Assembly: GCA_965153285.1 (NCBI GenBank) | Contig: OZ229113.1 | DNA length: 64,000 nucleotides | Source of the DNA: Podarcis tiliguerta | Taxonomy: Eukaryota | Strand: one strand, 5' to 3' | Shown: piece after piece, positions 57,837 through 64,000 of the stretch | How the letters are laid out: every line of letters begins with the position of its first letter | Position numbering within the stretch: position 1 is the first letter of the stretch | Position numbers and translations under genes: made by a program | Notes under the pieces: model-generated | Told to the model about the DNA's origin: nothing | Databases searched by the model: none | The model's input: only the letters and a program-made list of their open reading frames with translations

Positions 57837-59538
57837 CACTGGTCAACAACAAATTTGTTGTCTGTGTTTTTTCAGTTGATTTAGGACGAATCTGATGCGC
57901 TGAATCCAAAAATCACATTGGTTTTGCTCAATCAGGTCAAGTTTTTGAACTATGGCCACGTTATTTTTTTACGTTTTTGTTCACATGTACGCTTGTGTGG
58001 AGCATTTTAGAAGAAGTTGGGGGGGGGTAAAATGCCATGTCGAATAATTGTTTTGATTGGAAATGATTATTTTAATGACAAGAAGTATTCAGGTCTGATA
58101 GTTCTGGGTGATTATGTCAAAAAGGGATCAGTTTGAAGTCATAAAACCTCGAAATCTTCCATAAATTGGTGCAGCTGGGATCAACAGAAAGAACCGGAGC
58201 AGCCTCAAGTATCCTGATCTTCAATCAGCATGTTGTCCTGTAGCTCATTGTGATGAAATTCCAGTGCCTATCTTCGGAGAACTTCCTGACATTAGTGACG
58301 AAGATGCCTCCAGTGTTGAAGGACATGAAGAAGAAGAAGTGGTTCTTGAAGATGATGCTCCACATCCATTTTCCCAAAAGGAGTTGAATGATCTAGTTCA
58401 CGACCTCAGCTTGTCAAAGGACTCTGCCGAACTGTTGGGATCCAGATTGAAGGAAAAAAACCTCCTCTCTGACAGTGCTCGTATCAGCTTCTTCCGCAAC
58501 AGGCATCAAGAGTACCTCTGTTTTTTCTCGGAAGAGAAGGACTTGGTGTACTGTGCAGATATTGCGCAGCTTCTGCTCAAGCTTGGAGTGCCACAGTATG
58601 AACCCAAAGATTGGAGACTGTTCATTGACAGCAGCAAGCGATCACTGAAATGTGTTGTGCTACACAACGGCAACCAGTTTGCCTCTATACCCCTGGCTCA
58701 CTCGAGTACACTGAAGGAGAACTTTGAAGCGGTGAAGTATGTGCTGGAGAAAATTGGTGCCTTGCAAAGAAAGGAACGTCATCAATGACCCTCTGGTGGA
58801 CAGAGACAGAATACTCTTCCCACCGCTGCACATCAAGCTCGGCTTAATCAAGCAGTTCACCAAGGCTCTGGACAAGGATGGTGACTGTTTCACTTACTTG
58901 TGCCAGGCTTTTCCAGGATTGACCATGGAGAAGTTGAAAGCTGGCATCTTTGACGGTCCTCAGATCCGTCAGCTCATCAGAGATCCAGAGTTCGGAAACT
59001 CAATGAACGAAGTGGAACTGGAAGCGTGGAAGGCATTTGTTCTGGTAGTGAAGAACTTTCTTGGCAACAATAAGGTCAGAAACTACGCAGAACTTGTCAA
59101 CAACATGCTGACTGCTTTCAGAAACCTGGGCTGCAACATGAGCGTCAAGATGCACTACCTATTTTCACATATGGACCGGTTTCCTGAGAAATGAGTGACG
59201 AGCAGGGGGAGAGATTCCATCAGGACATGAAAGAGATGGAGACCAGGTATCAGGGTCACTGGGACGCAGTCATGATGGCTGACTACTGTTGGACTCTGAA
59301 GAGAGACCTCCCTGCCGCTGAGCATTCCAGGAGTTCCAAGAAACAGAAGTTCAAGCCCTAAAGTTTGAAAAATGGTGAAGCAACATGCAATTTACGTGTA
59401 CTTACCTTTATCAATGCCCACCATTCAGTTTACAGTAAACCTGACCTGATGGAGAGAAACGGATGCCATTTCCTGATTCAGCAGTGCAAAAGTAGAAATC
59501 TAGACAACATTCAAAAAGTAAAAGATTGTTGCCCAGTG
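57837..59538 (+). mobile_element. Chapaev3-type (CMC superfamily) DNA transposon, internally deleted
   Basis: TIR CACTGGTCAACAA / TTGTTGCCCAGTG; 3-bp TSD TTA on both sides; imperfect subterminal inverted repeats (ATCAGGTCAAGTTT / AAACCTGACCTGAT); transposase remnant inside. Confidence 0.85.
58177..59361 (+). pseudogene. Chapaev3-type transposase pseudogene (three frames)
   Basis: Motifs WRLFIDSSKRSLKCVVLH, LHIKLGLIKQF, GIFDGPQIR, MSVKMHYLFSH, SDEQGERFHQD and MMADYCW. Frame breaks near 58760 and 59190; N-terminal region missing. Confidence 0.85.
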
Positions 59539-60879
59539 TTATTTGCCTCTGCAGCTGTTGAGCAGGGGGTTGATTCTGTGCAGGGAGGCACCCCTGATCT
59601 TGGTTGGGAGGGATGGAGGATATACAAGGAACAGGATCCAGGGTGGGGTTGGTTCCCAGGTCAACCCAGGGCAGGTTAACCCACACCCACCCACCCCATT
59701 CTGTTGGAGCCATGAGACAGATTGTTGCAGCAGGGAGCTGTGCACAGCCTATTAAATTCTGTTTCGCTCTGACTTTGGTGACTTGAAGGGTTAATTTTCT
59801 GACTTTTCCTGTTGAAGTCTGTTGTTGATTTTGTGCATAATTGAACATAACTTTGTGGCCATGATTGATTTGATTGATTTGATACTTTAGCTCCTTTTGG
59901 AGGAGCTAAATGCCTCAACGAATATTTGCAAGACTTCTATTTGCAAATAGAAAGCCTCTACCAATTCCTAGCCCTGGCCTGTTGATTCCCTGAATTGCCA
60001 TGTCATGCTGTGCTTTGGAGCTAACAGAAGTGCAGCTGCTACCTGCCCCAAAGCCCAGCAGAATACGAAAAACACCCCTCTAAGTATCACAGAGCATGAA
60101 AGACCTCTCTCAATCAGCAAGTATATGCATGCCAGGGTGGTTCCCTCGCTTTTAGAGCAAAGAGGCTACCAAACCAGCAACGGTTTGTGGGAGGCCGCCG
60201 AGAGAAGCGGGCAGGAGTCTCTTCCAGCCCTATGTGGATATTCTGCAACCCACCCATTGAATTCCCCCACCGGCCAGATGAGTCAGCGCTTCGCAGATAA
60301 GGAATAATAAACGACGCCATCAATCTTGACCGCCGGAGCAGGAAGACTAGAAGGCAAGCGTTGGTTAAAATTACTCCTGGGCACTGGATCACCTCTGCGG
60401 TAGCTGTAGCCTGGAGACAGGGCCTGAGCGGAGTTTTAATACTCGGGGAAGGGAAAGAGCCAAGCCGAAGTTTTGGAGCCAGGTCAGGGGAGGACCAGAG
60501 GAGATCATAGGCCTGGGCGGGCAGTTGAACCCGACGGGCTTGAGGACCCAGCCTCCCCCTTGAGACGTCTTCTCCAGCTGCACTTCGTCATCCTAACAGC
60601 GAGAGTGGAAAGCTGTGAGGCTGTGAGGCTTCGGGTTGCTGGAATTACACTCTGAGAGGTGAAGAAGTCTTTTTGGCAGAGAGGGGTGAAGAGAGAGGAG
60701 ACGGAAGTTTAAATTAAACAAAACAAAGCCTGGAAATTCACAAAGCACTCTTCAACGAACTGCGGAGAAATCCCTGTAGTTAAATACTCAGCTGTACAGC
60801 TAAATCATTGACTGTGGTAGGAAGTCCCCTTCTTCTTTCCTGTATTACTCACATTATTTAGCTCATATCTACTGTGGCT

Positions 60880-62568
60880 ATGGGCAAGAGGAAACGCCTC
60901 AGAGAAGCAGAGGAATTACTGCTTCTCCCTAGCCCCAAGCTACAAGCTAAAGGAAGAAGAGATCAGCCAAATTTTCAAGCAGCAGTTACCACATACAATA
61001 GATTTCTTCCACTAAGTGACTTGGATGTAGCTAATAACATTCCCAAGTCCCAAAATACCACCTTACACAATTGTAACTTAACGAGCACTCCCAACAAGGG
61101 TGGGCCCGATGTGGATGGGGAAAAGATCCAGGATAAGGAGAACCAGCTGGGAAATGAGTCCTCCCATTTACAACTAGTCATTAGGACACTGGACTGCATA
61201 TTTAAAAAGATAGACTTTCTGACGTGCTCAATTTCCAAGCTAACGGAAAAAGTGATGGATATGGACGCCAAAATTGCCCTCAAAAATAACTACCAGAGGG
61301 GACCTCCAGTGATAGCCCCACCAAACTCTGGGGCAAAGGGGATGAGAAAATACAAACTAAACGATCTCATGTGTAAGCAAAATCTAACATTGCAACCTAA
61401 GAAGGTGTGCCTAACGATAAGGTCTGAGATTTGGGACTGGTCAAGCTTGGAAGGAGCTAAAATTGCCCTAAGTAAAATCTTGAGAATAAGCATAGTTCAT
61501 ATTGATCTTCATGCCTTACTCCCGCTAACTCAATCAAATGGCCCTTACAAAGTTATTTTAGCCTTCCGTTCGCTGAGACTACCCTTATTAATAATAAGAC
61601 AAAAATGGAAATTCATAAAAACAAAAATCATACCCACAAGGGTTTTTGCGGACAGCATAGTAAAACCACTACTTGTGGAAAAAGAGAGAGAGACATTAGA
61701 TCCAGGAACAAGCTCTACAAAATCGCCAGACAAAGAGATGTTGCTTTCCCCACAGAGAACGGAGGAGATTGCCTGCAGTCCACATCCAGGAACGAACTTG
61801 GGTGATTCCAGAATATCTAATGATGAAAGCGCCCTTATGAATTCATTTGACGAACTACAGTCACAAGAAAAAGAAAAAATAATAAATAAATTAGATAAAC
61901 TAAGAGAGAAGATGTCTCAGGCCAAAAGCAAAATAGGAAACAAAGAAATTCAAACCAACAGTGCCATTGGAGGCTCAGTGGACCTTCTCAAATTTAGCCC
62001 ACAGCCCCAAAATAGGCCCATAAAATCCAAGGCAACGATACAGACAATCGTCTCGCCACCCCTATTAGTCAATCTGGAACCAGCTCTTCCGGCACCAGCC
62101 GGAATGGTCACACCTACTAAAGAACAGCAAAATGTAAACAAAATTTCGACACACTCCTCAATGCCTGACCTGGAGTCATCATTATCGGGTGGAGAATCTC
62201 TAGTTGACGATTTAGAAGCTCAAACCGCTATCGATATGGACTGGACAGAAGACCCCTTGGGCCATATAAATAAGATGACATACCCACGGAAGGGAAATCT
62301 AAGAATAGTTAAAACTTGTACCGACTTAATCTCTGCTCCCCTAGGTGATAAGCTCTCTGATAAAACAAGGGATTTCAGAGAGGAGACTAGACCAAATCAG
62401 GACACTACCCCTATAGGACCGGCTGAGCAGAGCATAATTACAAATAGCTCAAGAGGTACATCTGCGCCAAAAGGAGAGAAGTCATCTACTATTAGTCAAA
62501 GGAAAATTACTGACTTCTTTAAATCTGACAACCCACCAAGGCCAGCGTTCCCCCCTTCCCTATTGTGA
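60880..62568 (+). CDS. LINE ORF1 protein (562 aa from the ATG)
   Basis: Uninterrupted 1.7-kb A-rich ORF; ATG in GCTATGG context; N-terminal KRKR, YNRFLPL motif, heptad-like segment, disordered C-terminal half; directly precedes the APE ORF. Confidence 0.8.
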   Translation: MGKRKRLREAEELLLLPSPKLQAKGRRDQPNFQAAVTTYNRFLPLSDLDVANNIPKSQNTTLHNCNLTSTPNKGGPDVDGEKIQDKENQLGNESSHLQLVIRTLDCIFKKIDFLTCSISKLTEKVMDMDAKIALKNNYQRGPPVIAPPNSGAKGMRKYKLNDLMCKQNLTLQPKKVCLTIRSEIWDWSSLEGAKIALSKILRISIVHIDLHALLPLTQSNGPYKVILAFRSLRLPLLIIRQKWKFIKTKIIPTRVFADSIVKPLLVEKERETLDPGTSSTKSPDKEMLLSPQRTEEIACSPHPGTNLGDSRISNDESALMNSFDELQSQEKEKIINKLDKLREKMSQAKSKIGNKEIQTNSAIGGSVDLLKFSPQPQNRPIKSKATIQTIVSPPLLVNLEPALPAPAGMVTPTKEQQNVNKISTHSSMPDLESSLSGGESLVDDLEAQTAIDMDWTEDPLGHINKMTYPRKGNLRIVKTCTDLISAPLGDKLSDKTRDFREETRPNQDTTPIGPAEQSIITNSSRGTSAPKGEKSSTISQRKITDFFKSDNPPRPAFPPSLL

Positions 62569-64000
62569 CTACCCAAACCTCAGTCAAATCCTCCCCCGTT
62601 CTCCCTTTTAAGCTGGAATATAGCAGGTTGGAAGGGGAAAAAATCTGACCCGGACTTTGTAAAACTAATAAACTCACACCAAGTAATTCTCTTGCAGGAA
62701 ACATGGGAAGAGGGGAGAGTAGACATTAATGGTTTTGATGTTACATCATTACCGGCATGCCCGTCTACTAAAGGAGGCCGGCCCAGAGGAGGATTAGTTA
62801 TAGCAATTTCCTTGAAAATACAGGCAAAACTCACGCTTGTAAATGCTTCCACCTTTGCAATTACAGCCCTGATTACGGGGGAAAACTTTGAACTTGTTAT
62901 AACAAATGTTTATCTTCCTCCTGGAGGCAATATTGCAGACTTACACAATAAATGGGGAACCTTGGAGGAACATCTCACTTTTTGCCACTCCAAATACCCC
63001 AATATACCCAATGTTATAGCAGGGGACTTCAACGCTCGCATTGCAACAAACTGGGAGTCTTTAATCAAAGCCAAATGGTGGATAACCCCAGAATTCATTA
63101 ATGACCTCTCCCTCCATAATCAAAGACTTTCCAAAGACAAAAGGGTAAATGAAGCGGGAACCCTTCTTTACCAATTGGTACTACGTCTAAACTTAGTGAT
63201 TCTAAACGGGAACTGCCTGCCTGACGTACCGGGCGAGTTTACACACATAAGCTCCTCTGCAAACAGTGTCCTGGATTATATATTAGTATCTCATGACATA
63301 TTCCCCAGAGTTTCCCATTTCAAAGTTGAAAATATTCATCTGAGCGACCACCTACCGTTGGTCGCCACAATGACTATAGACTGGACCCCAGATGGAAACA
63401 GACACCCAACACATCTGATTATGAACTCAGTATTGCAAATCAAAAGTGTAAAGTGGTCCGAATTACAGGCCCAAAATACTCAGCATATTTCCAACAAGGA
63501 CTAAAACAAGCATATTCAGGCTTAACCGAGGATTATTATGATTATGACCAAACTTTAAGACTATTCTCGAATCTGTCGGAAGATCTAACGTCTTTTTTCT
63601 CTGTCCCGACGCATAAAATAAATCGAACACAAAGGAAGATAGGTGCATTGTGGTTCAATAGTGCTTGTAAACAGGCTAGACAACTTCTCGGTAACATCTA
63701 CAAAGAGTATAAAGCCTCCGGGGCAACGGTCTTGCCAAAAGAATATTTCCAAGCAAAATCGGCCTACAAGCAAATTCAAAAGGGAGCCAGACAGGAATGG
63801 CAAGTGAATCAATGGCGAGCAATCATAGAAGCCTCATCATCACGGAACTCCAGACAATTTTGGCTCCTGGTAAATAAAAGAACTAAAAGATACCCTTTGA
63901 CTATTATTCCTGCCCCGGTTTGGGAATCTTACTTAAAAAATTACTTTGCCACAACTGACTGTATTGCTAACACAAGAGATGAATTTCAACATCAGCTTCC
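62569..64000 (+). CDS. LINE ORF2 N-terminal part (APE endonuclease + linker), one frameshift near 63489
   Basis: APE motifs SWNIAG, LQETW, NVYLPP, AGDFNA, LDYILVS and SDHLP. After a 1-nt shift at ~63489 the frame (FQQGLKQAYS...WFNSACKQAR...RQFWLLV...WESYLKNYF) stays open to the window end. Confidence 0.85.

Follow-up and report, generated by a model that had tools for sequence, protein, structure and literature searches.

An in-frame UGA-CUA junction between ORF1 and an AUG-less ORF2 in a Podarcis LINE: a candidate site of stop-codon readthrough

How the second open reading frame (ORF2) of long interspersed nuclear elements (LINEs) is translated from a bicistronic RNA is an old and unsettled question, and the answers given so far (reinitiation, stop-start coupling and internal ribosome entry sites, IRES) yield two separate proteins. 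Translation of L1 ORF2 is independent of an AUG, and an unconventional termination-reinitiation has been proposed for it (PMC5972666, PMC5009743). Stop-codon readthrough of type II takes place at the hexanucleotide UGACUA, found in Sindbis-like alphaviruses and a triatovirus, or alternatively at UGACGG; UGACUG occurs in Trocara virus, and experiments have established both UGACUA and UGACUG as readthrough hexanucleotides. A 3' structure is only conditionally required for UGACUA, and UGACUAG alone, with no added structure, gives at least approximately 1.3% readthrough in human cells (PMC13517186). Here we describe a LINE located at the end of a 64,000-nucleotide stretch of Podarcis tiliguerta DNA (contig OZ229113.1 of assembly GCA_965153285.1; the whole stretch is referred to as the window). 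ORF1 of this element is followed in the same frame, across a single UGA-CUA, by an ORF2 without an AUG before or within its endonuclease domain.

The junction in the window was read from DNA. ORF1 ends with TTG (62563-62565) and TGA (62566-62568), and the same frame proceeds with CTA (62569-62571) followed by CCC AAA CCT. Translated through the stop it reads ...PPSLL*LPKPQSNPPPFSLLSWNIAGW..., with endonuclease motif SWNIAG beginning 14 codons past the stop. Codon positions and translation thus bear out the first-pass annotation of this DNA, which had described exactly this passage from ORF1 into the endonuclease. Its statement that no ATG precedes the last endonuclease motif is likewise correct: none is present in frame across 62569-63369, so that no AUG adjoins the stop, and the first one follows at 63370. 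The start of ORF2 listed at 62692 is, as had been noted, a TTG within the endonuclease domain, set mechanically by the ORF finder; the GTG at 60874 is a mechanical start of the same kind for ORF1, whose ATG is at 60880. As ORF2 does not lie in another frame than ORF1, a programmed -1 or +1 frameshift does not apply. The context of the stop had been called leaky by reference to UGA-CUA and UGA-CUAG. The first part holds, UGACUA being the type II readthrough hexanucleotide (PMC13517186), but the base at +7 is C and the site reads UGA-CUA-C instead of the longer motif. By chance, a lone in-frame UGA-CUA would be expected with a probability of about 1/3 (frame) multiplied by a few per cent (context); the junction is raised above chance by the recurrence of the layout in other lineages.

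In Pfam searches, the 311-codon stretch after the stop matched PF03372 (Exo_endo_phos; residues 14-261, E 2e-11) and PF14529 (Exo_endo_phos_2; E 2.2e-12), and no Pfam domain was detected in ORF1. Because an apurinic/apyrimidinic-type endonuclease (APE) is predicted at the N-terminus of ORF2 by these two families, the element is classified as the 5' part of an APE-type LINE, i.e. a retrotransposon without long terminal repeats (non-LTR).

Four relatives of ORF1 were present in the protein collection: P0001, a fragment 91% identical to the window ORF1; P0002 from Zootoca vivipara, 34% identical; and P0003 and P0004, each approximately 30% identical. The ORF1 protein searches covered proteins of 0.55-1.75 times the query length, a range outside which long fusions fall. 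No additional relative was obtained in a profile search, and none in ORF1-based locus searches of metagenome, viral and prokaryote-genome collections. P0001 and P0004 end prematurely, at positions that bear no relation to each other, as in decayed copies. The window ORF1, P0002 and P0003, 30-39% identical, have in common a PIP-box-like motif, Q-(R/S)-K-I-T-D-F-(F/L), and in all three Q-x-K-I-T-D-F-F/L is located exactly 15 residues before the C-terminus (the stop position in Zootoca and P0003 being read from the proteins). Since three proteins so diverged would not share the position of a chance nonsense mutation, the ORF1 stop is, judged from these proteins, a property of the family and not a private mutation. 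The question whether the TGA is a copy-specific nonsense codon, raised at the outset, is answered by relatives of 30-34% identity that stop at the same position. The fixed distance between the PIP-like box and the stop further suggests that free ORF1p has a functional C-terminus. The Zootoca ORF1 (LOC118091683) and a 518-amino-acid ORF2 model (P0171, LOC118091684) carry consecutive gene numbers, which fits two adjacent genes of one element.

The same layout recurred in a scan of metagenome contigs with an endonuclease alignment, which yielded 80 LINE loci. Five contigs of ENA assembly ERZ1739169 (L002, L012, L014, L015 and L076; hereafter ERZ) encode endonucleases 27-40% identical to that of the window. 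Four of them have an ORF1 of 460-497 codons, and that of L014 is truncated by the end of the contig. In all five, the ORF1 stop is TGA, and the next codon is CTA (L002, L015), CTC (L012) or CTG (L014, L076). The frame is open from the first codon past the stop and leads through a linker of 121-180 codons, with no in-frame stop as compared with 5-16 stops in the other two frames, into SWNIAG and the rest of the endonuclease. ATGs occur in frame within these linkers at inconsistent places, and none is conserved. The four full-length ORF1s are mutually only 33-54% identical, and apart from the stop their ORFs show no disruption over more than 900 codons. As the reading frames before and after the stop have each remained open over several hundred codons, the ERZ copies represent, by the pattern of their sequences, distinct lineages under selection rather than the decaying progeny of a single insertion. 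Within the otherwise fast-changing linker the stop itself is embedded in an island of conservation, (D/E/N/S)(E/D)(V/I)D-stop-L.

For comparison, 46 other loci of the same scan were considered, in all of which an ORF of 150 codons or more lies upstream. The frame relation of ORF1 and ORF2 was random in this set (15/15/16), ORF1 ended with TAA in 25 loci, TGA in 16 and TAG in five, and at none of the 46 was TGA followed by CT. With a probability of 0.35 for TGA, and with the copies treated as independent, the chance that five diverged copies all keep TGA can roughly be put at 0.005-0.015. In the endonuclease tree, the clade of the window and Zootoca and the ERZ clade form distinct branches of one group (100/100), which also includes lineages with ordinary separated ORFs.

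Two observations on these contigs are added for completeness. The ERZ ORF1s end with EEVD, DEVD, NEVD or SDID directly before TGA; the EEVD/DEVD ending resembles the TPR-binding C-terminal EEVD of Hsp70/Hsp90 and also the caspase site DEVD. Among contigs with the prefix WLWI01, the sister LINE copies L039 and L029 differ in their junctions, the former being in frame across TAA-TTA and the latter in the +1 frame; in this clade the shared frame is accidental, in contrast to the ERZ lineage.

A stop kept in five of five ERZ copies with ORFs otherwise intact over that length is difficult to reconcile with the idea that the family possesses one long ORF with a sense codon (e.g. CGA) at this place and that the TGA arose by copy-specific or recurrent decay, as a nonsense mutation in a dead copy. 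The same holds for the three ORF1 proteins of 30-39% identity that end at the identical residue relative to the conserved motif, and for Zootoca, where the annotation gives ORF1 and ORF2 as two genes in succession. The idea draws on the fact that the window copy is defective elsewhere (a frameshift near 63475), that the change from TTG-CGA to TTG-TGA is a single CpG transition at a hotspot after the preceding G, that the length range of the ORF1 searches would miss long fusion proteins, and that Naja naja protein P0141 is an uninterrupted ORF combining an ORF1-like part with an endonuclease. We regard it as very improbable.

Relatives of ORF2 were informative with respect to the missing ATG. 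The window endonuclease shares 62% identity with a Zootoca protein (P0155, in one cluster with P0171). The P0012 cluster of Podarcis muralis and P. lilfordi comprises at least six ORF2 models, each 942 amino acids long and each starting with MRRTSKD, which corresponds to endonuclease residue ~185. P0012 is 56% identical to the window over the shared end of the endonuclease, its linker is colinear with that of the window, and it contains a reverse transcriptase domain (RVT_1, E 8.7e-33). Because models that require an ATG drop most of the endonuclease, these Podarcis ORF2s, which are otherwise intact, by implication lack an in-frame ATG upstream of residue ~185. An initial M in Logan-derived proteins was left out as evidence for a start codon (the M of P0169 corresponds to V in P0165).

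The cobra Naja naja may hold a third case of a shared frame. In P0141 (KAG8125768.1), the motif of ORF1 type (E 6.8e-5 against the ORF1 alignment in hhalign) and the endonuclease are located in one uninterrupted ORF, a hint that the two parts share a frame in this family as well; the stop may be elsewhere in the cobra family or may have been lost in the P0141 copy. A sister copy of P0141, P0022 (KAG8131822.1), has an M start 18 residues before motif I.

From these data, we consider it very probable that the in-frame UGA-CUA followed by an ORF2 without an AUG before or within the endonuclease is a conserved architecture. Reading through UGA-CUA at the ORF1-ORF2 junction is the explanation of ORF2 expression that we prefer, at roughly even odds. 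The wider proposal, that a squamate LINE lineage and the separate ERZ lineage make endonuclease and reverse transcriptase only as a UGA-CUN readthrough fusion of ORF1 and ORF2, is offered tentatively, its chances being slightly less than even. In such a mechanism, most ribosomes would terminate at UGA and release free ORF1p with the PIP-like box at its C-terminus. A small fraction would decode UGA with a near-cognate tRNA and go on, and an ORF1-endonuclease-reverse transcriptase fusion would result at a low fixed ratio. The window copy is no longer able to make this fusion because its ORF2 is frameshifted near 63475. The comparative features of readthrough are present, namely a single in-frame stop, a conserved UGA, conserved C at +4 and U at +5, and coding sequence directly after the stop. 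UGA is the leakiest of the three stop codons.

The positions of the features discussed are compiled in Table 1.

Table 1. Features of the LINE in the window and ORF1 end sites in the ERZ contigs
Feature	Position	Strand	Remarks
ORF1	60880..62568	+	562 codons plus TGA stop; ATG start at 60880; protein begins MGKRKRL
PIP-box-like motif	62497..62520	+	Q-R-K-I-T-D-F-F, 15 residues ahead of ORF1 C-terminus
Junction	62566..62571	+	UGA then CUA, i.e. type II readthrough hexanucleotide UGACUA
Post-stop in-frame codons	62569..62607	+	13 codons (LPKPQSNPPPFSL) before Pfam endonuclease match; no ATG
ORF2 apurinic/apyrimidinic-type endonuclease	62608..63351	+	Frame shared with ORF1; Pfam PF03372, PF14529
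First in-frame ATG after ORF1 stop	63370..63372	+	Behind last endonuclease motif (SDHLP..VATM)
Frameshift site	63473..63476	+	A-run one base short relative to the reading of Zootoca P0155
ORF2 continuation (linker towards reverse transcriptase)	63474..63998	+	+1 frame, open to window end
ERZ ORF1 end sites	L002:1701-1721, L012:1702-1722, L014:245-265, L015:1699-1719, L076:1901-1921		

Several points weigh against readthrough. A 3' stimulatory structure was not found: folds covering 100, 155 and 301 nucleotides around or after the stop were compared with shuffled sequences and gave z values of -0.93, -0.72 and -0.03, the last for the 301-nucleotide fold around the stop. The stimulator looked for downstream of the stop is therefore not borne out, the folds being indistinguishable from those of shuffles. 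An alignment fold of the five ERZ junctions gave only -1.68 kcal/mol. The window site, UGA-CUA-C, is without the stronger CUAG. The missing AUG is not diagnostic of readthrough, since the AUG of L1 ORF2 is likewise dispensable for its translation. Judged by sequence, an early ATG is commonly but not universally missing among the relatives, since the Zootoca ORF2 models begin with MLFLCWNIAGW and thus have an ATG five codons before the W of motif I; the expectation that no ATG precedes SWNIAG accordingly agrees with what the Podarcis models imply but not with Zootoca. With no spacer between the two ORFs, selection acting on each of them also maintains their shared frame passively. Homology of the window ORF1 to the ERZ ORF1 was not demonstrable (hhalign probability 0.8%; only an NRF..L motif aligns). 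We know of no LINE that works via an ORF1-ORF2 fusion. Finally, the support for readthrough at the junction comes from sequence features and not from translation, and readthrough is to that extent unproven. What stands of the readthrough first suggested for this locus is the in-frame UGA-CUA architecture without ATG, which is not copy-specific; the readthrough itself is the part that stays a proposal.

The leaky stop may be placed differently in the polyprotein from one family to another, directly behind the folded block of ORF1 in ERZ as opposed to after a long linker in the window family. That the stop moved within one homologous protein is not firmly claimed, as ORF1 homology between the two is not shown.

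The principal alternative is termination at UGA followed by AUG-independent reinitiation just downstream, at a non-AUG codon or, in Zootoca, at the nearby AUG. ORF1p and ORF2p would then be separate proteins, and the shared frame would be inherited and without function. Precedents are L1, for which an unconventional termination-reinitiation is thought to make an AUG unnecessary (PMC5972666, PMC5009743), and the stop-start coupling of SART1. The Zootoca ORF2 ATG lies approximately 10 codons past the expected stop position, and the passively kept frame and the failure to find a stimulatory structure add to this. A functional C-terminus of free ORF1p would be in keeping with the conserved ..EVD-stop of ERZ and with a PIP-like box so close to the stop. 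Reinitiation leaves unexplained, however, why the window and five diverged ERZ copies have TGA-CT, which occurs at none of the 46 other LINE ORF1 stops, TAA being the commonest among these. Moreover, no conserved start codon of any kind was identified, and the ERZ linker is open from the first post-stop codon. On balance, we rate reinitiation as unlikely, though to be taken seriously.

The sole recurrent pairing at the junctions is a hairpin of five base pairs that contains the stop itself and is too short for significance alone. In the window (62566-62586), UGACU pairs with AGUCA 11 nucleotides downstream. Its ERZ counterpart is formed by GACU(A/G) and a conserved CUAGU(U/C) approximately 17 nucleotides downstream, within the first ~28 nucleotides past the stop. 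Such a hairpin around the stop, together with an ORF2 without AUG, might point to other routes to ORF2 expression: conversion of UGA to UGG by A-to-I editing, known from the amber/W site of hepatitis delta, insertion of selenocysteine, or an IRES with non-AUG initiation of ORF2. A pairing of five base pairs is much too short for ADAR editing, however, and the 301-nucleotide fold did not stand out from shuffles. Rfam revealed neither a selenocysteine insertion sequence (SECIS) nor any other family in 60000-64000, the 3' untranslated region (UTR) being outside the window, and no structured region precedes ORF2. Routes of this kind have very little probability in our view.

The window copy is defective because one base is missing in the A-run at 63473-63476. 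After this frameshift, the frame of ORF1 and the endonuclease runs into a stop at 63502-63504, and the continuation of ORF2 in the +1 frame is colinear with P0155 and P0012. The window stops at 64000, inside ORF2 and ahead of the reverse transcriptase. No second LINE copy was detected in the window by self-BLAST and tblastn. A stretch rich in G+C (60250-60700; 0.53-0.57 compared with ~0.42 in the ORFs) lies directly upstream of ORF1 and may be the 5' UTR or promoter of the LINE. Further upstream, 1.7 kb from the LINE, an ORF of 151 codons with an ATG start (MCWRKLVPCKERN...; 58739-59194, plus strand) matched no Pfam family and resembles a piece of a protein from another mobile element.

With respect to its clade, the element is placed by sequence comparison outside L1, because ORF1 is without Transposase_22, the window endonuclease had no PDB match at E 0.01 or better although PDB includes the L1 endonuclease, and the reverse transcriptase of its relative P0012 is about equally distant from L1 ORF2p (E 3e-25) and R2 (E 6e-21) in PDB. 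The protein atlas was uninformative for the clade of the element; the L2/CR1 group or another clade is possible. According to recent surveys, lizard L2 elements lack ORF1 (PMC13343379) or have a non-esterase, AT-rich ORF1 (PMC7140322).

The AUG-less ORF2 also has consequences for annotation. Gene callers cut such ORFs at an internal ATG or TTG; this costs the Podarcis models 185 endonuclease residues, and it also accounts for the listed start at 62692. The 942-amino-acid models of the P0012 cluster, at least six of them annotated as 'reverse transcriptase domain-containing proteins', are without the first ~185 endonuclease residues, a systematic shortening that follows from ORF2 being AUG-less. 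Surveys may then list such elements as ORF1-less or their endonuclease as broken.

If readthrough holds true, the element would provide the first example of gag-pol-style recoding among non-LTR retrotransposons. A conserved leaky UGA with an AUG-less ORF2 would add a retrovirus-like solution to those listed at the beginning, with a fixed ratio of ORF1p to fusion, and the fusion would provide a built-in cis-association of the enzyme with its RNA-binding partner. Full-text literature searches, in which older LINE work is thinly covered, returned no description of stop-codon readthrough between ORF1 and ORF2 of a LINE.

Among LINEs, the element resembles mammalian L1 in the order of ORF1 and ORF2 and in an ORF2 translated independently of an AUG; L1 differs in having a spacer (63 nucleotides in human) or overlapping ORFs, and makes no fusion protein. 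SART1 and other R1-type elements with UAAUG are likewise LINEs and couple the translation of ORF2 to ORF1 termination, but their mechanism requires a downstream structure and a stop overlapped by an AUG, whereas the present element has no AUG at the stop. In single-ORF LINEs (R2, L1Tc/ingi, ZfL2-2), an N-terminal nucleic-acid-binding part and the endonuclease and reverse transcriptase are joined in one polypeptide, so that a fused protein is workable in principle. They contain no internal stop, in contrast to the conserved UGA that divides the frame here.

Outside the LINEs, the same hexanucleotide, UGACUA, is present at the nsP3-UGA-CUA-nsP4 junction of alphaviruses (Sindbis, O'nyong-nyong) and in vertebrate UGA-CUAG genes (MDH1, OPRL1), and UGACUG of Trocara virus recurs in two of the ERZ copies. 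As in alphaviruses, a polymerase follows the stop in the same frame, and only little of it would be made. The alphavirus and vertebrate cases are viral polyproteins or cellular genes, many of them with an extended 3' stem-loop or a G at +7, both of which are absent here. In gammaretroviruses such as murine leukaemia virus (MLV), gag-UAG-pol joins a nucleic-acid-binding structural protein and a reverse transcriptase enzyme in one frame with one stop, as in the element described here, for which a fusion at low ratio would be the corresponding product. MLV uses UAG-GGA and an obligatory pseudoknot, compared with UGA-CUA and no detectable structure in this non-LTR element. By analogy, alphavirus nsP3/nsP4 and gammaretroviral gag-pol would thus be its closest counterparts in mechanism, while in kind the element is a LINE.

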